From: Dimorphilus gyrociliatus
Lineage: Eukaryota; Animalia; Annelida
DNA: 64,000 nt
NCBI GenBank assembly: GCA_904063045.1
Contig: CAJFCJ010000005.1
Span: forward strand, 1,007,988-1,071,987
Direction of reading: 5' to 3'
Part shown: one piece after another, positions 52,986 through 64,000 of the stretch
Position numbering within the stretch: the stretch's first letter is position 1
How the letters are laid out: the number at the start of each line of letters is the position of its first letter
Notes under the pieces: generated by a model
Databases searched by the model: none
What the model saw: the letters and a program-made list of their open reading frames with translations, nothing else
What the model was told of the DNA's origin: nothing
Translations under genes and position numbers: made by a program

Positions 52986-55569
52986 ATGGAAGCACCCAGC
53001 TTACAGGTAACGAACGTTTCTATGGAGTTAAACTTATTTGAAAATTGCGATATTCTTAAAGGGATTTTAACTGAAAATTCGAATTTAACCCACTTTCAGA
53101 CTAAAGAGTTGTGCCGGCATTGCGGTTCTGAAGTCGTAGAATTTAAAAATCATCGTTTTAAGGACGAATCACTATTCAAGTTATGTTCTTCACCAATATG
53201 CGTTGCTGATGCATTTGATGACAGTTGGGCGGGTAATTTGCCATACGGAAACGATCAGCCAATTTTGGTACCTTTACCGATAAAACCATCTGTACCGTCT
53301 CAAAACAATGACTATCAAGATATTCTAGACGAGATGAATGGGTGTGTCACAGTTCCTCACCAAACAGAAAATACTTCAGACCTTTTACCGGTTGAGTCCA
53401 ACTTTGTTCCAATAAAAACTACTGAAAATTGTAAACTAAGTGAAGATTCTTCAGGAATAGATGTTCAATCTTGCTCTTCTTCTAATTCTGATAATAAAAT
53501 GAAGATGTCTAGTCAAAATGTATTTTTGAAGTTAAAAAATGAATTACCGGACAAATCTCAACTTGAAAAGAGATTCAAAGACGTGCAAAAATGGCCTCAT
53601 TGGAAAAATGAACATAATCTGTGCTGGTTAGACGTTTTACTCACAATTTTCGTCCATAATTCAGTTTTAAGAAGGCTTCTAAGGATGGAGGAGAATCATA
53701 GGACCACTTTACACCAATTAATAGCTACTTACGATGATATGATACTGCTATTGAATCCGCATTTAAGAAGAGTTTCGCCCGAAAGTGATATTGAGGGAAG
53801 ATATGAATTAGATAGTTCTTCGGTTGAGGATGTAGTGGAACAACATATGAATAATATTCGTTTCACAGTTCTTGACTCCTTAATACCTGATTTACGAAAT
53901 TATAAAATTGGTAATGCTGAAAGTCCAGTGAATGCCTTAAAACTACTCATGAAAAATTCTGCTAATATACGGCAATTTCTACAAGTTGAATTCACAAACA
54001 CAACTGTATGTCAAACATGTGGAGCGTCCGATACAACAAATTTAGTTAGAGACTTTGTCACAATACCATCTCCAACTAAAAACCTAAGCTTTAGAGCACC
54101 TACCTACCTTCGAAAGTGTCCTAATATCAAATGCAAAAACTTGGAAGCCCATAGCACTATAAAATGGAAAAATTTACCTCCCTGCTTTGCGTTTCTATTT
54201 CCAAACGGCTATAATCCTGAAAAATCAAGAATTGGCAATATATTGCAGTACCTAAATTTTGAATTTGAGCAGAAAATGTACAAGTTGAGAGCTGTTATTC
54301 AACTTGTTGAGAAGAAATTTAAAGGAGCAGTCAATCATTTTATAACTTGGATCAGGGATTACGAATGTAAGTATAATCTTGATTTTTTCGACTAGTAGTT
54401 TTTCCTAAATATTAGTCTATCTAAGTAACATGACGTCATAATGCAGAATATGCAAATACATGTGTAGGTAAAAATGTTTTAATGAACGAGTATTGAAAAC
54501 TAAGGTATGAGATTGTGTTTTATGACTAATTTGAGAACGTCACTGAGATCAAAGAATGTTATAATAGGCTTGTTTTTCGCTGTTCTTTCAGCAAGGACGA
54601 TTTAAAGGCTGACGGAGACAGATATCTGTCCTGCAGTCCTCAGCCTGAAGACGAATTCTGTTTAGAACGGTACGTTGTGATTGTTTTGCAAAAAGTGATA
54701 GTTCAATTCAAAATTCCTAAAATGCCTTTTTTTTAAATCTGTCTACTAAATGGAATATGAGGAAATTTGAATCGGACCTGATAAAAAGTAACATTAAGAA
54801 TTAAGCAACGATACCCTTTTTTCTCGCTGGTATCTGGGAAGAAAGAATTTACCAAACTTGGGGATTTCGATATAGTTGTACTCTCTTCTGAAATAACCTT
54901 TTTTGTTCTTCAGGTGGCCACTGGATGCGATGCGATGATTTATCGAATGCTGAACTACGTTTCCAGAAAAATACACCTCTGATCTATTCCACTGAAATTT
55001 CCATGCTATTTTTTGAAATTTCCGATGAAGATCCTGTAAACCTTAAACCTAGAGTGACCACACCAGTACGTACCAAACAAGCTCATGCAGCTATTCCGAA
55101 TCCTATTCAGCACAACTCTAATGGAAAATCAAAATTTGACTTCAGTTCTCTAAGTAGTTTTCCATCATATCAGAGAAAAATATCGCATTCATCACTTTCA
55201 TCCCCCGTTTCTGAACCTTCGGGAAGACGAAGGAAGCGAACGAGGGATAGCCTTAGTGTAACAAATGGGGTGACAGTGAATCTTATTCCTATATGTAAAA
55301 AGCCCAAAAAGTCGGTTAAAGAGACTCTAATTCCCGTAAGCGAAAACACTACGTCAAAAGTTGAACAGGTGCCATCCGAAATTAAGGAAGATGCAAGTGT
55401 CAATGCAGTGGATGAATCAGAATGTAAGAAAACAGAAGACAATGGAATGAGCGAACATGATATTACAAGAATAATTGATCCTTTGCTCCCAAACAACTTG
55501 AGTACTGATTATGATTTAATGAGAGCATTGAATGACGATATTCTATCGGGATTTCTAACTGAAACTTAA
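52986..55569 (+). CDS. USPL1: SUMO-specific isopeptidase USPL1 (peptidase C98), ~678 aa
   Basis: Exons 52986-54366 and 54914-55569 (phase 1). Catalytic motifs WKNEHNLCWLD (Cys codon 53622), NHFITW (His codon 54336) and WMRCDDL. Zn-finger pairs CQTC and CPNIKC. Confidence 0.88.
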
Positions 55570-56048: not shown

Positions 56049-59000
56049 ATGGATACCGTAGTCGCTGTTGGATTTCTCTTCTATTCCTTTTTAATACAAT
56101 CAGAAGCCGCTTGTAAGTTCTATAAGTGTTAGGAGGAAGGATGAATTTATTCCTGCTTGCATATTCGCAACTTTCTTATATAAAATTTTATATTAGATGT
56201 TAGCTCATCGTGTAAAAAACCATATTTCCCGTGCAAGAACTCAACTTCCGGTTCAAAGGTATGAAAAGTTAATTAAAATAGAAAAATGCAAATATTAGGA
56301 AATACTTTATGTACTGTATATGATTTTACATTCCTCAATGATCAATCAAGTACTGTCTTCACCAATTTTTCTGGTGCGATGGAAAAACTCACTGCATTGA
56401 TAATGCTGATGAAAAACGAGATCTGTGTGAAAGTAAGTTTACTATAATATGTTTTTTATTTGTATTTTTTATTATTTTTGTTTTTTTTTATACAAATCAC
56501 TAAGATATCTTACTTTTCGACGTACAGATGTTTATAGTTCGAAATCTCGAGCTCTGTCTAAAAATGTTAATTTCAAACTAGCCGCAAATTTCAACAATCG
56601 AAGAAATCTTTTTAGTTTCTTTCACAGTTGCAGTAAGTTGAAAAAATGTTTCTTTTTTTTCATCTTCTCTTTAATCTTTTAAAAATGTACGACGAATAGA
56701 ATTGAAGGTTTTACCTTCAAAGGGTCTTTGCAATTGTTATAGTAAGACGAAAATGATATGCGATGGAATGAATACTACTCTAGTTGGCGATGAATTCGAT
56801 AGAGATACAACAAAAATGTAAACGAAATCATATATAATAATAATTTCCCAAGAATAAATCAATGCTACTTTGTTTTTAAGTGTTATTCAAAATCCGAATA
56901 TAGAGCATTTGGATTTTAATTGGTGTCGGTTAAATATCTCCTATAAGAGCTTAACAGTTTTGTAAGTATGTTTTTTTTTAACGTTTCTTCCTATAAAACC
57001 AATCATTTTTTTGAGTAGATCTTTGAAGAATGTCAATCGATTAACCTTCAAGGAGTATTGTTTGTACAGGACGCTTCCAAATCTTAAATCAATGTAGGAA
57101 TATTTATAATTAAATGTGTGTAATAGGATCCTTATAAATATTGATTACATCGAAATCAGATTCATTAAGAACAGCGGATTTATGAGTATACGAAATGGAA
57201 CCTTTAGAAATCTCTACCACTTAATCAGGATGTAAGTAGGCAATTTTGAAGGGTTAATCAAACGACCGTCTCTTCCGTTTCAAACAGATTTGCGAATGAT
57301 AATAAGATATCGCTTTTGGACAAAGACGCTTTTTCCAACCTAATAAATCTTACTTGGATGTAGGAATTATAAAACAAAAAATCTCTTAAACGTTCTATTC
57401 TATTTTTAACTATTTAACATCTTTATTCATTTTGTTTAGACAAATGAATGGAAACGAACTAATCCTAAGCGAACCTTTCCCAGAAAGTTTGTCATTAACA
57501 ACGCTGTAAGAGAGTATCAATTCGTAATTCAACAATTGCATTTTCCCGCGTTATTATTTATAGATTTCTTCGAAACAATAGAATTACTAGGATATCATCA
57601 ACTACTTTTGCAAAAGTTCCCTCATTAACTTGGCTGTAAGTAAACTGTTGGTTAATAAATCAATGGAAGTAGTACAATCTATATCTTCGCCTTATATCAT
57701 TCTATTTAGTGACTTAAATGGTAATCTTATTAAGACAATAGAGAGAAGTTCTTTCGTTAATTTAAGACGGATTGAAATTATGTAAGTATACTTATATATA
57801 AAATTTATTACAAGAGGAAGGAAGGAAGCAAGCAAGGGAGAGAGAGACAGGAAGAATAAGATGATGAATGAGAGGAAGAAGAAAAAAAATGACTACTATT
57901 TTTTTCTTATCTTCTTTTCAGTGACTTATCAAAGAATTGTCTGAGAAAATTAAAATCGGAATATTTTATCGGCAAAAACCAAACAAGTATCGTCACTCAA
58001 TTTTCCATTGCGCACAATCCTTTAACACTGAGAAGAGGAGACGATTTCCTTAAAGGAATGAAACGATTAGAGACGCTGTAAGTCATTTGACATATATGAT
58101 TTACGTAGCTGCTTTTATCATTTTCATTCTTTGACATTTGTCCATTTTAGTAATCTCTCAGGAGTTGAGATAAACAGCATTAATCTCAGCGAAAACAAAC
58201 GTTTAAGACACGTCTATTTCAAAAAGTTTTCCTACTGTCAGTTTGCCCCTGAAGTTCAAGTTTGTCAGCCGAAAACCGACGGTCTATCGAGTGACAAGCA
58301 GTTAATTGATAATTTGAATCTACGTTATTTCGTATGGGTTATATCGATTCTGACAGTAATAAGTAACCTATTCGTCATGGCTTACAGAGTTGGCAGAGAG
58401 GATAGAAATTTTCATTCCATCTTTATATTTAATCTAAGTGGTAGATATTGTTGCTAGGCGTCTGCCTGAAAAAATTCAATTCTGATTTCTAATGATCACA
58501 TACAGCTGCCGATCTGATGGTTGGCTTGTATCTTTTAATGATAGCATCAAGAGATGTCATGTATAGAGATAAGTTTATTCATAGTATGCATCAGTGGGTT
58601 TACAGCAACTGGTGCCAAATTACGGGTTTCATAGCTATGGTATAAATTAAATAAATTTATAAAAAAAATAATCAATAAAAAGCATCTTTAACGCAATTTT
58701 TAAGCTGGGAAGCGAATCTTCTGTCATAATTTTGGCATTTATGTCCATTGAGAGATTTCTTACGATCTCTTACCCTTATAAGAAGTTCGTACGGACAAAG
58801 ATGCGAGCTCTTTTGTGCATGACTGTAATCTGGGTTATAGGAATAATTCTTTCAGCTATTCCCCTTTTTGTGTATGGTCGTTATTTCTACGGACAAAATG
58901 CGGTAATTATAGTATTTTACGTACTTATCCAACATAAATAGACTCGTACTGAATGATTATAGACACTATGCATAAATATCTTCTCTAAGACAAGTAAAAA

Positions 59001-59746
59001 GACTACCTCCCGCCGTTTTTATACTTTTTATTTCCAGGTTTGTCTTCCTTTGCATATTCATGATACGTTTATGACTGGATGGGAGTTTTCGGCCCTTGTT
59101 TTCATTGGAATAAATTTTGTAGCGTTCATGCTTATCGCTTCAACCTACTCAGCCATGTTTATCAATATTAGAAATACTAGAAAAGCTTCGGCCCAACCAA
59201 ACTCGGAAAAAAGTTTTGCAATTCGATTTTTCTTTATTGTTCTTACTGATGCTTGCTGCTGGATCCCTATTATCGTTCTGAAAATTCTTGCTTTCTGCGA
59301 TATCTTGATTGATCGTTGGTATTTGTGAGTTTAGTAATTTTACAAAAGCTGAGCTTTTCTTTTACATTTAGAGAGAGTTTATGGGTGGTTATCTATCTTA
59401 GTTCTTCCGATTAACAGTCTTATAAACCCACTGCTGTATAGTTTATCAACACCTGTATTTATTCGGCGGGCTGGAGATGTATCAAGATATCATTGGAGAA
59501 GAATTGTTCCTAAATCGCTCTCTCGTGAGTCGTTCAGAAATGAATTTGTGTTTATTAAATTGACAAATGAAATATCTCCTTATATCAGTTTCCCAGCCAC
59601 GGCGTTCGTCTGCTAAGACTTCTGCAATTACAGGAGCGCTTTCGTTAGAGAATAGGAAGAAATCGACAATAATACATTGTTCAAAACTCAATCAAACATC
59701 GAAGGGAAATGGAGATTGCAGGGAAGATGCTTCAGATTGTGTTTAG
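56049..59746 (+). CDS. Relaxin/INSL-type LGR receptor (type C1): signal peptide, one LDLa, LRRs, 7TM
   Basis: Signal peptide MDTVVAVGFLFYSFLIQSEA. LDLa CKKPYFPC...CLHQFFWCDGKTHCIDNADE. Multiple ~70-75 nt LRR exons. Hinge CQPKTDGLSS. TM motifs MSIERF, YGQNAVCLPLH, FFFIVLTDACCWIP, LPINSLINPLLY. A last intron 59526-59588 leads to the stop at 59746. Confidence 0.88.
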
Positions 59747-60085
59747 TCATTAATTAACTATTAAAATATTAATTATAAATAAGTTATCAACCCCTTTAAC
59801 CCGGAAACAATTTTCCATTTTTCTCTTATTCATTACTATTGTTCTTCCCCTTCTTTTGTTATCGCGTTTACGTAATAATCTTCAATAGTTTATCCCGGTA
59901 TCGCCATTAAATGTTCAGTTCAATCGGGATAGGCCTAATATTTATTGTTCTAACTGTGCTCATTAAGCGTTTGACAATCGCGTTTAACCAAACGACGTCA
60001 ACGGATATCAACGTTCGGTAGGCCGTTTATAGTTTAGTGGTGACATAAATGGGACACCAAATCGAAAGAGTACCTTAGTTTTAAT

Positions 60086-60787
60086 ATGTCTTTCGACGAC
60101 TTCTCATCATCTTACGAGCCTTCGATCCCATGGTTATGGATCAATTCCGGATTGTCCAACGATGTTATAATGGAGCAGCTAATTCCTGATATACAATTAC
60201 CTTGGGTACCACCACCGGTTATACCATGTCCAACTGGCCCAAAGAGTTCTTGTTCTCAAGCAGCAGAATACGAAATTAAAAAAGAGCCGAGTAACCAATT
60301 GAAAAATGCCTTATCTGATTTACAAAAAGCGGAGAGAGAATGTGAAATATTAGAACAAGAGTTTGAAACTGTTAAATCAAAGATAAAGAGAAGGAAGCCG
60401 GGACCAAGAGCTGGTGCGCGTAATATGATGTATAAAAAACCGGAAACATATGTTCAAATTGTCTCAAAAGCCATTCTCTCGAAACCTGAACGAAGAGCGT
60501 CATTAGCAGATATATACGAATATGTAGAATCAACAAAGTCATCAGTAACAGAAATTCCTTGTTCATCGTGGAAAAATACTGTTAGACACACACTAAGTAC
60601 TCATGAATTTTTCATAAGAGTTTCAAAAGCAGAGAACGGCCTTGGTTACGTATGGTCAATTCATCCAGATTGTGTACAAATGTTTGAAAGCGGAAACTTT
60701 GAAGTCCGACAGGCCAGAGTAACAGCTAAAATGAATCCTGTAAAGCAGTATTGTTGTTCGCGAAAACATAAGACTACAAATGTTTAA
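60086..60787 (+). CDS. foxQ2: Single-exon forkhead transcription factor, FoxQ2-like (233 aa)
   Basis: KKPETYVQIVSKAILS...LADIYEYV...SWKNTVRHTLS...NGLGYVWSIHPDC...FESGNF...R.AR. The WxIHPxCxxxFxxGxF..R.AR ending is typical of FoxQ2. Confidence 0.8.
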   Translation: MSFDDFSSSYEPSIPWLWINSGLSNDVIMEQLIPDIQLPWVPPPVIPCPTGPKSSCSQAAEYEIKKEPSNQLKNALSDLQKAERECEILEQEFETVKSKIKRRKPGPRAGARNMMYKKPETYVQIVSKAILSKPERRASLADIYEYVESTKSSVTEIPCSSWKNTVRHTLSTHEFFIRVSKAENGLGYVWSIHPDCVQMFESGNFEVRQARVTAKMNPVKQYCCSRKHKTTNV

Positions 60788-61066
60788 AATTATTTATTTA
60801 CCGTTTAATTTTAAATGTACATGTTTTTTTTTTCAATGGTCGTTAATTTCAATACAAATGAGACCCGCCAAAACTAATTGAGAATTTCCGGTTTTAGACT
60901 GGCAACCTAATCCGCTGCATTAAAAATCATTCATTAGGTCAGCTGGACAGTTAATCGGGTATATTTTTTGAATGTAGATGTGCCTTAACAACTTTCACAA
61001 AGTTGCCGAAATAAGCTTTCTTTGGATAACTATCTGTTTATAAGTATAACTCAAACAAATACGGAT

Positions 61067-62893
61067 ATGAATACGAGATCTAGAATGATAAAAATGGAAT
61101 GTGAAAGTTCATTTGAAGATTTGGGACTTTCAAATAACAAATATGACTCTCAAATTATCGCTCTCATTAATTATTTACAAAAAAAGAAATGTTTTGAATT
61201 CAAAGAAATACCTATTTTGAGAACAAATGGAAAAGCAAAACCACTTGATCAATTACTTATGATAATTCTACAAAGTAAGGAAATTTGGAAACATGTAACA
61301 CAATTTTCAACCGGTTCCCTTCTCTTTGAGCTATTTCTCTCATTCTATAAGGAAGTTGTTAGGGCCAATCCAAATTGTCTGAAATTTGGAAGTATTTTTG
61401 ACCACCAGAGCAGAACATTCTTTCTTTTAAAAGAATCCAAATTTATTGAAGAAATGGTTGAGCTAAAGCAGAGTATAACATCCATATTAGAGTCTGAGAA
61501 CCTTGCAAAGCGGCTCACAAACTGTGACGATTTCGTTATAGTGTTGAATAAACTATTGGGAGACGCCTGTGACCCAGTAACTTATTTTACGCAAACCGAC
61601 TGCGTAAGATGCGGAAGTTATCGGAAACATCACGAATGCAAAGAAAACATGGATTCTGTATCCATTTCGGGAGTCGTAAAAAATTTAGACATGTGTTTGC
61701 CTGTCTATTATGACAATTGCACAAAATGTAATTACTCGGATACCCCGCACTATATAGTATGGCATGAAATTCCTCAGTTTTTAATGGTTTCCTTCAAAGT
61801 TCCATACTCTTTTGAAAGTCATATGAGATTGGATGAAGTGGAGAAGAGTTTGAATTTTGAATTCAATTCAAAATCCTACGTACTCCATAGTATTACTTAC
61901 AAACGGGATAGAGAGGTTGTCGGCAGTTGGATTAAAAGTTTTGACAGTTGTTTTGCATACTTTTTCCTTAATACTTTAATTACATTAAATCTTTTAAATT
62001 CCTTTCAGGTGGACTTTGGTTGGAGACGAAACGATTTCGTTACTCGGGCAAATTGTCAAAATGTAATAATGAAAAGATAAGTTTGAAAAATATAAAGTTA
62101 ATTGTTTTCCAACGAAGTTATAAAGTGATGAAAAATAGTATATCCAATAGACCAGCTTGTTCAAAGCACGAAAGAAAGAATCAAAAGATACTGGAAAAGA
62201 AAAAATTCACTGCTATTTACACAGAGGAAATATATAATTTTCTTCGTTTACGAGAAAGTAAGAAAGCGGATCTTGAAGAAATCTATAATCACTTAAAAAC
62301 TGCAATTTCACGAGGAAGATTGAGGAAAAGAACAGCCTTATCGGTTATGCTTGAGTCGAATAAGTTTTGGAAATTGGAAACGGGTTATTGGACTATTAAA
62401 ACGGAATTCCTTCAAAGGTTCTCGTCAACATTTCGCACAAGCGATGTTAAAATAGAGAAATCGGAAGAGCCTGTGGTAAGATTCTCGAATAAATGATAAT
62501 AACAAATAAAATTAAAAGTAAGCAATGATCCTATAGGATTGTGATAGGAAAAACTGGGCACTGGAAGGAGAAAGCGACCAGGATGAAGCAACTCACGTTA
62601 ATGATTTAGAAGAGCAAGGGCATTTTGAGAAATACGTGGAAATTATTCTAAAAAGCATATTAAGAAATGAAAATCGCTTTACAACGACAAGAGAAATCTT
62701 TTGCAATTTAAATTCTTATTATGGAAATGTACCGCCGTACGGATGCAGACCCCTTGTCCTTCAAATTTTAAAAAAATCAAAATGTTTCGTGTGCAAGAAA
62801 TTTGGTCATTGGAATTTAACGAAGAGTTCTTACAGAGCCGTCAAATCCGGAATATTTGACCTTAGAACATTAGAAATTTTACTTAACAGTTAG
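61067..62893 (+). CDS. Chimeric protein: catalytically dead USPL1-like domain plus two degenerate forkhead-like domains (~567 aa)
   Basis: Exons 61067-61946, 62009-62475, 62537-62893; GT-AG introns of 62 and 61 nt; 1704 nt open frame. The N-part aligns by eye with the window's USPL1 (LDQLL/LDVLL, CVRCG/CQTCG, LNFEFNSKSY/LNFEFEQKMY, SWIKSFD|SGLW/TWIRDYE|CGHW). The C-part has two repeats that align with the window's FoxQ2. Confidence 0.72.
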
Positions 62894-64000
62894 CAGTTAG
62901 CTAATTTATATATATTTATATTTATATCTATATATATAAGATACTAGTGACATCTGTCTACTTGAGTTTAAAATACATTACATAAGTTTTCACCTTTAGG
63001 TCGTACTGTAGACTGTTTAGAAGCAAATGCTGCATTTTTTTTAAAGTTGATTTCTAAGAGCTTAGGGAGAAACTTCAGATTTTGAAACCCTGGGAAAATC
63101 AGTATTAAGTTTACACTCTCTTTAAAACTGAATTAGAAAGTAAAGCGATTTTTTTTATATTGATCGAACCTATCTATTTTGTTTGTACTTTTTCCCTTTT
63201 GATTTAGGAAGACATGCTCTTTGGTTTTTTTTTACTAAGATAAATATCAACAAATGTTATATCGCTAATGAGAAAAAAAAAGTAGTATTTTTTTTTTTAA
63301 AAAGAAAGAAAGAAACAGAAAATAAAAAAAATGTAACAGTTTACTTTAATATACATTTTTTCGTCTGGAAAAAGTTCAATAAATTTGCATTCTTAATGGT
63401 AACGTTTACATACAGCTGCCGAGATATACATAATTTAAATATTTAAACTTTTTATATCGAAAAAGAAAAGGATAAATTAGCTCTTCCATATCCTATGCAT
63501 ACATTCATTAATAATATAGACTAGTCGGAAGATGAGAAAGATGATTTTCTCACGTTGACAAGGTACAAAAAAAAACAACTTTCTACGCAATTGAAACTTA
63601 GATTTTAAGGCGCCAGTTAAACTTTTTTATTTTTTTTATTAGGTCAACCGTATGTTATCAATAATATATGTGCTACTTTCGTAACACATAAAGTGCAAAC
63701 TTAAGTCTTTGAATATATGCGTGCCAGTAAGTTAAAGTGTCCAATAAAGAAGTTTAAAGGTATAATTATCTCGGTCTTGAAAAGACTATTGATATACATT
63801 TTTTTCTTTCTCTCCAAGCTATCGCAATCGTTCAAAGGTTTAGCGAATATTTTAGTGCTTTCGGTGCTATTAATGTTATGATTTTATTGAACATTAATAA
63901 AAATAAGAATAAGAATACAGATTTGACAAATGAAAAGGCTTGTGGGTGGGAGATCACAGCGTGTGGGAGAAGTAAAGGATTAACAGCACTAAGAAACTAA

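Follow-up and report, generated by a model that had tools for sequence, protein, structure and literature searches.

An expressed chimeric gene of Dimorphilus gyrociliatus joining a USPL1-like pseudo-protease domain to a probable forkhead-type winged helix

The locus, its transcript and its neighbours

The locus at positions 61067–62893 of the window (the whole 64-kb stretch of DNA analysed here) is a spliced, transcribed, protein-coding gene in Dimorphilus gyrociliatus, and is carried in the database annotation as the uncharacterised DgyrCDS3314. Its three coding pieces, 61067–61946, 62009–62475 and 62537–62893, join into 1704 nucleotides, that is, 567 codons plus a stop with zero internal stops, and encode a basic protein (pI 9.1). 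Four RNA runs (X1, X3, X4 and X5), which come from two studies, each contain one long RNA contig that carries both splice joints, 61946>62009 and 62475>62537 (the latter is listed in the contig placement as 62474>62536, cut +1), and each joint is flanked by >255 letters on either side without mismatches. The frame of about 567 aa that a preliminary description had assembled from three open-reading-frame fragments is thereby confirmed, as are the exact positions of its two introns (phase 1 and phase 0), each joint being present in spliced contigs. Because approximately 7–8% of random codons are stops at the G+C content of 31.6%, an open frame of 567 codons is not attainable by chance. The gene model and the two neighbours that we presume to be its parents are as follows.

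60942..63265, + strand: mature transcript, from RNA contigs (5' ends at 60942–60979, the X4 contig starting at 60942; 3' end at or beyond 63265, X1 contig)
61067..61946, + strand: coding exon 1, aa 1–293 and the first base of codon 294
61947..62008, + strand: intron 1, 62 nt, GT..AG, phase 1; joint in four runs
62009..62475, + strand: coding exon 2, aa 294–449 (end of the C98-like domain, basic linker, candidate first winged helix)
62097..62150, + strand: 54-nt in-frame stretch, an intron in DgyrCDS3314, retained in the four RNA contig sets
62476..62536, + strand: intron 2, 61 nt, GTAAGA..TATAG, phase 0; joint in four runs
62537..62893, + strand: coding exon 3, aa 450–567 and the stop (acidic linker, forkhead-like winged helix)
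52986..55569, + strand: USPL1 gene (DgyrCDS3312), probable parent 1, exons 52986–54366 and 54914–55569; catalytic Cys, His and Asp intact
60086..60787, + strand: Fox gene, probable parent 2, single exon, divergent

The transcript is distinct from the contigs of the adjoining Fox gene, whose ends fall near 60830, and its contig depth is at least that of Fox in the four runs. AATAAA signals lie at 63321 and 63378, 3' of the transcript extent seen. The database protein (P0001, 549 aa) equals our 567-aa model minus 62097–62150. The joint that this would require is absent from all four RNA contig sets, and these 54 nt, which specify the final beta-strand of the USP fold, have remained coding sequence in the orthologue from a second species (P0002, see below). 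The RNA contigs thus favour the 567-aa frame, and the database model appears to drop a real coding segment.

The two neighbours lie where they had been reported, USPL1 8 kb upstream (Pfam Peptidase_C98, E 5e-37) and Fox ending at 60787, 280 bp upstream of the target ATG (Pfam Forkhead, E 2.4e-19), both on the same strand as the target; the order USPL1 then Fox is also the order of the two corresponding domains in the target. USPL1 matches the human USPL1 structure 7P99 with E 4e-17, no Pfam domain is found in its C-terminal exon, and a search with it returned only three dinophilid-like sequences. A USPL1 transcript of a third species (L004, run SRR31837527) was also seen. The Fox neighbour had been called FoxQ2-like, a label that is not supported: among solved structures it is closest to FOXL2, FOXC2 and FOXA. 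A word-based search with it returned only itself. Genes in the window are generally spaced a few hundred bases apart.

The USPL1-like domain and the candidate winged helices

Within the encoded protein we delimit the following elements, all on the + strand.

61199..62121, + strand: C98/USPL1-like pseudo-protease domain, aa 45 to about 331, split by intron 1 (hhalign, BLASTP, tblastn)
61238..61240, + strand: Lys58, at the catalytic-Cys position of USPL1
61601..61729, + strand: zinc-ribbon fingers; Cys179, Cys182, Cys218 and Cys221 invariant and aligned to the USPL1 CxxC...CxxxxC
62197..62421, + strand: candidate winged helix 1 (WH1), aa 357–431, pI about 10; putative
62609..62878, + strand: winged helix 2 (WH2), aa 474–563, predicted forkhead-type fold, pI 9.7 (AF2, Foldseek, VIA, hhalign)

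The likeness of the first ~330 aa to USPL1, initially seen by eye, is borne out by profile alignment: hhalign of the target and its orthologue against two USPL1s gives a probability of 98% and E 1.5e-13 over 244 columns, target residues 45–295 corresponding to USPL1 195–457, and BLASTP gives E 6e-9. In tblastn against the window, USPL1 is the best non-self match for both orthologues (E 3e-6, and 1.8e-9 for that of the second species). The homology spans the full catalytic domain, which has the right-hand fold of USPs, including thumb, fingers, palm and final strand. Intron 1 falls in the same column and the same phase 1 as the USPL1 intron (54367–54913 in the window), after W-I-R-D-Y-E, and this holds in both species, the phase of the USPL1 intron on the second-species contig L001 being equal as well. 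The Pfam profile PF15499 (Peptidase_C98), with which the two bona fide USPL1 genes score 113–128 bits, has no match up to E 10 in the exons, P0001 or P0002. An Atlas feature search with the whole protein pointed to UCH/USP, a lead only at scores <0.9.

The catalytic triad of human USPL1 is Cys236-His456-Asp472, and its zinc site has also been defined (PMC8983731). We transferred these positions to the target through the alignment of the local USPL1 with the human structure. At the catalytic cysteine, N-L-C-W-L-D of USPL1 has become K-A-K-P-L-D, placing Lys58 there, where the orthologue has Gln; a deletion has removed the His box; and Asp-Asp is replaced by Glu-Thr in the target and Ser-Gln in the orthologue. 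Since the whole Cys-His-Asp triad is lost, the domain should be incapable of SUMO isopeptidase activity, in agreement with the pseudo-deSUMOylase nature originally proposed for it. The position of the SUMO2-contacting Asn398 is likewise occupied by Thr or Pro. Besides the four zinc ligands, the orthologues have no cysteine in common but Cys191, which belongs to a conserved RKHH-x-C insertion (His188, His189, Cys191) after the first CxxC of the fingers; by sliding identity between the two orthologues, the fingers are the best-conserved block of the protein (47–53%, vs 31% overall). Judged by its sequence, the N-terminal ~330 aa is a diverged USPL1/C98 paralogue that lacks the triad and keeps the zinc cysteines, and hence a predicted USP-fold pseudo-enzyme, with the scaffold retained, the catalytic residues lost and the frame conserved between species.

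For the C-terminal half, an AF2 structure model built from a three-row alignment has a mean pLDDT of 61, and its exon 3 portion reaches 70–82 with the topology H-S-H-H-S-S. When WH2 was searched with Foldseek (3Di plus residues), the top 36 among 350,000 PDB chains were all forkhead domains (TMt up to 0.75), and the top 30 among 550,000 Swiss-Prot AFDB models were all Fox proteins. VIA-align superposes WH2 on FOXN1 with Z 9.0 over 82 of 84 residues; forkheads as a group score 8.5–9.0, vs 8.5–8.7 for ZBP1 Z-alpha and 7.9–8.0 for cullin WHB, and geometry alone does not discriminate among them. At the sequence level, hhalign of exon 3 against the adjoining Fox gives E 3.4e-4, a score reached by none of 200 column shuffles, and the similarity runs the full length of the forkhead domain, taking in helix 1 (E-x-Y-V-x-I-x-x-K-x-I-L) as well as the S-G-x-F-x-x-R motif of clade-I wing 2. 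Exon 3 is nearer to this gene than to the Pfam Forkhead consensus, and in tblastn against the window the Fox forkhead region is the best match for exon 3 from both orthologues independently.

A Pfam scan of all exons, P0001 and the orthologue found no family at threshold, so that in the Forkhead and Peptidase_C98 profile check suggested earlier no part of the gene reached threshold, and PF00250 (gathering threshold 27 bits) has no match in the D. gyrociliatus exon 3. The sole sub-threshold Forkhead match is in exon 3 of the orthologue, for which Forkhead outranks all others of the 24,736 Pfam families (16.4 bits, E 0.01, profile positions 6–41 only). Of the recognition-helix signature W-x-N-S-I-R-H-N-L-S, Asn, Arg and His are replaced by Pro, Leu and Gln in D. 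gyrociliatus and by Met, Gln and Gln in the orthologue, and Ser by Lys and Asn, respectively; because of these four replacements, exon 3 is unlikely to read canonical forkhead sites. Two-row profiles of exons 2 and 3 retrieved no forkhead chains from PDB; the matches that they gave to Cas12c1, vitamin D receptor, AIMP1 and CHMP1B were dismissed as spurious, and a zf-CCHC match in exon 3 (E 0.18–0.46) was rejected, as the final Cys of the motif is missing and the orthologue has not kept the motif. Taken together, models and profile comparisons support a winged helix of forkhead type in exon 3, with the adjoining Fox as its closest match.

The preliminary description had proposed tandem forkhead-like domains, which stands for exon 3, on the fold, Foldseek and hhalign results, and not for exon 2, where the evidence is marginal. 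In the full-length single-sequence AlphaFold model WH1 shows H-H-H-E-E at pLDDT 54–66 (range for the exon 2 domain, 50–66), and a second model has three helices and no hairpin. WH1 aligns with WH2 in register (hhalign E 0.087), a score reached by 13 of 200 shuffles, and the score of WH1 against the adjoining Fox is reached by 5 of 200. A fold search with WH1 found no match, and tblastn of the target against the whole 64-kb window found no further paralogous piece and no parent for WH1. Atlas features for the C-terminal half and WH1 gave WHD_RNase_R, HARE-HTH and DUF3860 as leads only (scores <0.9). A sequence search of PDB with P0001 found nothing; taken as a whole, the full-length single-sequence model (pLDDT 35) was of insufficient quality, and a wide fold search with it gave a best Z of 6.1 and mixed helical matches for residues 343–426. 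The basic helical module of exon 2 may be a winged helix.

Distribution and rate of evolution

An exhaustive HMMER search of 1.8 billion representative proteins returned one true relative, P0002; the third match, P0003, is a bacterial repeat protein and was rejected as a spurious low-complexity match. On contig L001, which encodes P0002, the gene order is SLC3A, USPL1, Fox, target, and the three-exon layout is the same, making P0002 a syntenic orthologue. Its start keeps the exon 1 motif M-x-x-RSRM; its intron 1 has two candidate donors in the genomic sequence alone, and V-I-N-H, a remnant of the His box that may be coding, is present in the second species. The claim that the gene is lineage-specific therefore stands in that the architecture is found nowhere else among the 1.8e9 representatives, and fails in that the gene is not unique to D. 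gyrociliatus. Since a syntenic orthologue exists, the fusion is older than the split of the two species.

The orthologues are 33, 27 and 36% identical in exons 1, 2 and 3, vs 91% for Fox and 74–78% for the C98 domain of USPL1. The target dN is 0.64–0.91, vs 0.13 and 0.05 for its USPL1 and Fox neighbours, and its protein divergence is 5–7 times that of USPL1. Synonymous sites are saturated between the two species (dS ~1.1 to 2.5 or failing by NG86/LWL85; YN00 fails), and the dN/dS of ~0.33–0.36 (NG86) that the suggested comparison yields is below 1 but unreliable for that reason. The case made here for purifying selection relies chiefly on the retention of frame and splice layout, not on omega. 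The gene is known from two related species only, and it evolves fast with its frame preserved. The helix 1 of WH2, at 50–53% identity, is conserved well above the average of the protein.

Origin, function and comparison with known systems

Our preferred explanation, to which we assign a probability of about 0.7, is that this is an expressed chimeric gene in which a dead USPL1 domain, a basic helical module and a forkhead-type winged helix were brought together by local duplication, and which acts non-catalytically. A local-duplication origin is likely; the exact route, and the descent of exon 3 from the adjoining Fox specifically, we infer. Most likely, a block running from USPL1 to Fox was duplicated in tandem at the DNA level, with the copy placed directly 3' of Fox; a deletion inside the copy would then have joined the USPL1 catalytic domain to the Fox-derived domain, the fusion being complete before the two known species split. 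The intron position common to target and USPL1 points to duplication of DNA rather than retroposition. A common intron position also fits duplication of USPL1 from anywhere, if the intron is ancient.

A less probable account, and in our estimate an unlikely one, takes the N-terminus as a dead USPL1 paralogue and the C-terminal modules as generic winged-helix or helical domains (HARE-HTH-, linker-histone- or Z-alpha-like) that adjoin Fox by coincidence in a very compact genome. Adjacency is indeed cheap where genes lie so close together, and ZBP1 Z-alpha, cullin WHB, LmrR and H1/H5 all come within 1 Z unit of forkhead domains in VIA-align; the Atlas leads do not include Forkhead, the Pfam Forkhead match is sub-threshold and confined to the orthologue, and the recognition-helix residues are missing. 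However, a generic winged helix would lack the helix 1 and wing-2 motifs covered by the match to the adjoining Fox, which beats all 200 shuffles; both Foldseek lists are forkhead throughout their top 36 and top 30, Forkhead ranks first among the Pfam families for the orthologue exon 3, and both orthologues pick the Fox forkhead region as their top match in the window.

Two further explanations seem to us very improbable. The gene might be a transcribed, decaying relic of USPL1 and Fox copies, functionless and under relaxed constraint, its long frame a mere leftover; the loss of all catalytic and DNA-reading residues, the 5–7-fold divergence, the lack of any Pfam match and the restriction of relatives to one other species are what such decay would leave. 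Yet with dS >1, and with stops so frequent among random codons, a frame of ~567 codons is open in both species, together with the same three exons, a conserved start, and conserved blocks in the zinc fingers and WH2 helix 1, and the transcript is cleanly spliced in four runs at a contig depth not below that of Fox. Alternatively, it could belong to an older and wider family of USPL1-like pseudo-proteases with winged-helix tails, not assembled locally, whose members are too diverged or too poorly sampled to be seen. Few meiofaunal annelid genomes are in the databases, and at ~31% identity where Fox retains 91%, HMMER would miss orthologues from other annelid families. An origin elsewhere hardly accounts, however, for a target on the same strand as, and 8 kb and 280 bp from, genes whose order matches its domains, for the intron position held in common with USPL1, for an exon 3 nearer to the adjoining Fox than to the Pfam consensus, or for the absence of the architecture from all other representatives searched.

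As to function under the chimeric-gene explanation, the dead protease scaffold could serve as a reader or decoy that binds SUMO, a SUMOylated protein or a partner of USPL1, and the basic winged helices could make non-sequence-specific contacts with nucleic acid, chromatin or protein. USPL1 is known to have essential functions independent of catalysis, and pseudo-enzymes make up ~13% of DUBs (PMC10919355). We infer that the protein would read SUMO or act as a decoy, with the basic winged helices as its tether; neither the SUMO-contact Asn398 nor the forkhead base-contact residues are conserved. The more specific proposal of a young gene in which a dead reader of SUMO or SUMO conjugates is fused to winged helices of forkhead descent, themselves no longer able to read forkhead sites, we regard as doubtful. 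If true, the protein would be a factor of a new type, either recruiting SUMOylated proteins to chromatin or RNA or working against USPL1; an arms race, or a part in reproduction in a species whose sexual dimorphism is extreme, could lie behind its fast evolution.

Compared with USPL1 (C98; human 7P99), the target is homologous over the whole catalytic domain, with the four-Cys zinc site and the final strand, and has an intron position in common with the local gene. It differs in lacking the triad, a Pfam C98 match and both ends of USPL1 (an N-terminal region of ~200 aa and a disordered C-terminal tail), and in having the inserted, conserved RKHH-x-C, a 5–7 times faster evolution and fused winged-helix modules. 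With the target one can ask whether a USPL1 scaffold is able to read SUMO once catalysis is gone, a question relevant to the little-understood roles that USPL1 has outside catalysis. PAN2, and pseudo-DUBs in general, have been discussed previously (PMC10919355). The target, too, keeps a USP scaffold without catalytic residues. In USP39 and PAN2/USP52, a USP scaffold without catalytic residues is reused for binding or scaffolding, often beside nucleic-acid-related domains. Those proteins, however, are ancient, conserved and of the ubiquitin lineage, whereas the target comes from the SUMO-specific USPL1 branch, is confined to a single small lineage of annelids and has a forkhead-type domain attached. 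No other pseudo-enzyme is known to us that derives from USPL1, the SUMO-specific branch of the USP fold, and none came up in the papers that a literature search found.

Like the clade I forkheads (FOXL2/FOXC2/FOXA-like) and the adjoining Fox, exon 3 has the predicted topology H1-S1-H2-H3-S2-W1-S3 over 82–86 residues of the solved domains and a basic charge, and its helix-1 and wing-2 S-G-x-F-x-x-R motifs match those of the adjoining Fox. In contrast to them it is below the Pfam threshold, has its recognition residues replaced and forms the C-terminal end of a protease-like protein. Neither domain of the target is picked up by standard domain scans, a point of note for annotation. Annelids have fast-evolving orphan Fox genes, among them fox orphan-3 of Owenia fusiformis, which carries RING and RAWUL domains and is confirmed by RNA-seq (PMC9539403). 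Both genes combine a divergent annelid forkhead with a domain of a ubiquitin-like modification system; in Owenia, however, the forkhead is intact and its partners are RING and RAWUL, whereas in the target little is left of the forkhead signature, and it is a dead SUMO protease that the domain is joined to.

Jingwei-type genes of Drosophila are chimeric new genes formed through tandem duplication and fusion. As in those, the target forms a new frame from parts of two genes and then evolves rapidly in sequence. It makes an unusually clean case of new-gene origination, with the presumed parents next door and the junctions validated by RNA, and the second species indicates that the fusion, for all its very fast evolution, has outlasted the saturation of synonymous sites. 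Unlike the jingwei-type genes, the target has both presumed parents still adjacent on the same strand, and its intron position indicates duplication at the DNA level, not retroposition.

A chimeric gene and its transcripts

The DNA contains a chimeric gene that is real and expressed. It is known from two related species only and lies on the same strand as and directly downstream of a Fox gene, with a USPL1 gene about 8 kb upstream. The G+C content of the window is 31.6%. The features are as follows.

Features of the locus
52986-54366 and 54914-55569, + strand: bona fide USPL1 gene (Pfam Peptidase_C98, E 5e-37; human USPL1 structure 7P99, E 4e-17)
60086-60787, + strand: single-exon Fox gene (Pfam Forkhead, E 2.4e-19)
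61067-61946, 62009-62475 and 62537-62893, + strand: three exons of the chimeric gene
61946 to 62009, + strand: intron 1 joint (GT..AG, 62 nt), in RNA contigs of four runs
62475 to 62537, + strand: intron 2 joint (GT..AG, 61 nt), in RNA contigs of four runs

Joining the three exons gives a frame of 567 codons without a stop. Contigs from four public RNA runs (two studies) were aligned to 59800-63500, and in each run one long contig showed exactly two joints and zero mismatches; the RNA is therefore spliced, and the three open reading frame fragments joined in the preliminary description do form one frame of about 567 amino acids. These contigs start at 60942-60979, extend to at least 63265, and are distinct from those of the Fox gene.

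The database protein DgyrCDS3314 (uncharacterised, 549 amino acids, from the annelid Dimorphilus gyrociliatus) is 100% identical at its N-terminus to exon 1, and its model also splices out 62097-62150 (54 nt, in frame). The joint that would remove this segment is absent from all four RNA contig sets, in which the segment is retained; in alignment it corresponds to the final USP-fold strand of USPL1, and the orthologue conserves it as coding sequence. For these reasons the 567-residue form is the better model, and the public annotation probably cuts out real coding sequence. A minor 549-residue isoform alongside it is possible and compatible with the contigs.

Between the end of the Fox gene and the chimeric gene's start codon lie 280 bp. 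A search of a 5.8-billion-protein collection found no five-residue word common to the Fox gene and any other protein, and the solved structures most closely related to it are those of FOXL2, FOXC2 and FOXA; it is therefore an orphan, lineage-restricted Fox, and the earlier label "FoxQ2-like" was not borne out. One run (X1) yielded an unspliced contig of 3268 nt that begins left of 59800, crosses the Fox gene and stops at 60830. Its length implies window positions 57563-60830, so that it probably also covers GPCR-like open reading frames at 58131-59328. Its source could be RNA, either unspliced or read-through, or else carried-over DNA. Contigs of two other runs (X4 and X5) in the region 60561-60877 carry a 64-nt joint corresponding to a minus-strand intron, 60738-60801, whose ends are CT..AC on the plus strand and GT..AG on the minus strand. 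Since the skipped part holds the Fox stop codon, this is not an intron of the Fox mRNA. Its appearance is that of a spliced antisense RNA, which would begin within the 280-bp spacer, point away from the promoter of the chimeric gene and run on into the Fox coding region.

The USPL1-like domain

No Pfam model was significant on the N-terminal domain. When exon 1 was compared with the adjacent USPL1 by BLASTP, the match had E 6e-9 and lay in the C-terminal half, and a profile of the protein and its orthologue matched a profile of two USPL1 proteins with a probability of 98% (E 1.5e-13, 244 columns), residues 45-295 corresponding to USPL1 195-457, the entire C98 domain. USPL1 was also the top non-self match when either orthologue was searched by tblastn against the six frames of the window (E 3e-6 and 1.8e-9), and the alignment carries on into exon 2, to about residue 331. 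Intron 1 is in phase 1 right after W-I-K-S-F-D, and the USPL1 intron is in phase 1 right after W-I-R-D-Y-E, likewise in the second species. The proposed alignment of the first 330 or so residues with USPL1 is thus upheld, and the common intron position and phase fit duplication at the DNA level, not retroposition. The USPL1 counterpart of this intron (54367-54913) is about 547 nt long, against 61-64 nt for introns elsewhere in the stretch.

Human USPL1 has the triad Cys236-His456-Asp472 and a fingers zinc held by four cysteines (PMC8983731). Mapped by alignment, the position of the catalytic Cys holds Lys58 here and Gln in the orthologue, a deletion takes out the His box, and Asp-Asp has become Glu-Thr. 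The only cysteines invariant between the two orthologues are the zinc ligands 179, 182, 218 and 221, and Cys191 in a conserved inserted RKHH-x-C. The zinc-finger region is the most conserved stretch of the protein (47-53% identity versus 31% overall). Because the triad is lost while the zinc cysteines and this region are kept, the domain is, as read from its residues, a dead USPL1 paralogue, a pseudo-protease whose fingers subdomain has been maintained, as the term "pseudo-deSUMOylase" had anticipated. At 61601-61639 is encoded a strictly conserved C-V-R-C-G-S-[YF]-R-K-H-H-[ED]-C, containing the first zinc CxxC; USPL1 lacks the additional His-His-x-Cys that comes after it, and these residues might make up a second metal site or an altered one.

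The C-terminal winged helix and a candidate in exon 2

AlphaFold2, run on a three-row alignment, predicted H-S-H-H-S-S for residues 474-560 (pLDDT 70-82). In Foldseek searches with this exon 3 model, forkhead domains made up all 36 of the top PDB matches, the best being FOXN1 (TM 0.75 by target, rmsd 2.6 Å), and all of the top 30 in the Swiss-Prot AlphaFold set were Fox proteins matched through their forkhead domains. The highest VIA-align Z was 9.0, over 82 of 84 FOXN1 residues; in the re-ranking and in an independent wide search, ZBP1 Z-alpha, cullin WHB, LmrR and H1/H5 came within 1 Z unit of forkhead. The modelled fold is certainly a winged helix, and its assignment as forkhead-type is based on the Foldseek combined score and sequence evidence, since VIA-align Z puts other winged helices close. 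For exon 3 of the orthologue, Forkhead ranks first among Pfam families, though below threshold (E 0.01). Against the neighbouring Fox, exon 3 gave E 0.003 by BLASTP and E 3.4e-4 by hhalign (positions 9-100 of the 101-residue forkhead-region alignment), a score of 26.9 that none of 200 column shuffles reached (11.0 ± 2.4). The match takes in unusual helix-1 wording common to both and, after wing 1, S-G-x-F-x-x-R, which is the wing-2 motif of clade-I Fox proteins. Neither species keeps the helix 3 Asn, Arg and His that contact bases.

The exon 2 module (residues 357-431) is basic, with a pI of about 10 in either species, and is predicted as three helices, with a hairpin in just one low-confidence model. 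Its in-register alignment with exon 3 (E 0.087) was equalled by 13 of 200 shuffles and its score with Fox by 5 of 200; a fold search with the module returned no match, its Atlas features gave weak winged-helix leads only, and tblastn found no parent for it within the window. The odds that it is a winged helix are about even. Of the tandem forkhead repeats proposed earlier, the one in exon 3 is supported and the one in exon 2 is a candidate winged helix.

Distribution, origin and relatives

An HMMER search of 1.8 billion representative proteins turned up a single true relative, the orthologue P0002 (E 2.8e-40, 34% identity). It is encoded on a 24.9-kb contig (L001, run SRR23372228) with the same order as here: SLC3A-type gene, USPL1, Fox, orthologue. 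Its exon 2 and exon 3 frames are open, and the layout matches. Public assemblies contain at least two more related species: that of L001, and a third (L004, Logan SRR31837527) with a USPL1 (P0008) 85% identical to that of L001 (Logan SRR23372228) and 79% to that of D. gyrociliatus. The two would permit a three-species test of the chimeric gene.

Identity between the two species
Fox: 91%
USPL1 C98 domain: 74-78%
USPL1 tail: 53%
Chimeric gene, exon 1: 33%
Chimeric gene, exon 2: 27%
Chimeric gene, exon 3: 36%

The dN between the two species is 0.64-0.91 for the chimeric gene, versus 0.13 for USPL1 and 0.05 for Fox. Its omega is about 0.33-0.36 (NG86), indicative only as dS is saturated. The frame of about 567 codons is open in both species despite the saturated silent sites; open frames, conserved blocks and clean splicing speak against a relic and in favour of a functional protein that is partly constrained.

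The domain order, USPL1-like then Fox-like, is the chromosomal order of USPL1 and Fox. The simplest route would be tandem duplication of the USPL1...Fox block, after which an internal deletion would have fused the duplicated copies.

Judged by its residues, the protein cannot be an active isopeptidase. Some essential roles of USPL1 are independent of catalysis, and pseudo-DUBs commonly serve as binding scaffolds (PMC10919355); the USPL1 zinc-finger subdomain touches the SUMO2 β1-β2 hairpin (PMC8983731). By analogy, the maintained zinc-finger subdomain would fit a retained partner-binding surface. The Asn398 position of USPL1 is not conserved. An acidic linker sets apart the basic winged helix of exon 3 and the basic exon 2 candidate, and together these suggest non-specific nucleic-acid, chromatin or protein contacts. 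That the protein acts as a SUMO reader or decoy has perhaps one chance in four or five.

The gene is moderately interesting, the tandem forkhead and functional claims being only partly supported. No other case of a C98-derived pseudo-enzyme with a forkhead-type domain appeared in the searches run here. The kinds behind it are already known: the pseudo-USP, and gene fusion after tandem duplication. USPL1 is the homologue of its N-terminal domain, from which it differs in having no catalytic triad. Also among its nearest known relatives are USP-fold pseudo-DUBs and the rapidly evolving annelid orphan Fox genes; an Owenia member of the latter bears RING and RAWUL domains (PMC9539403).
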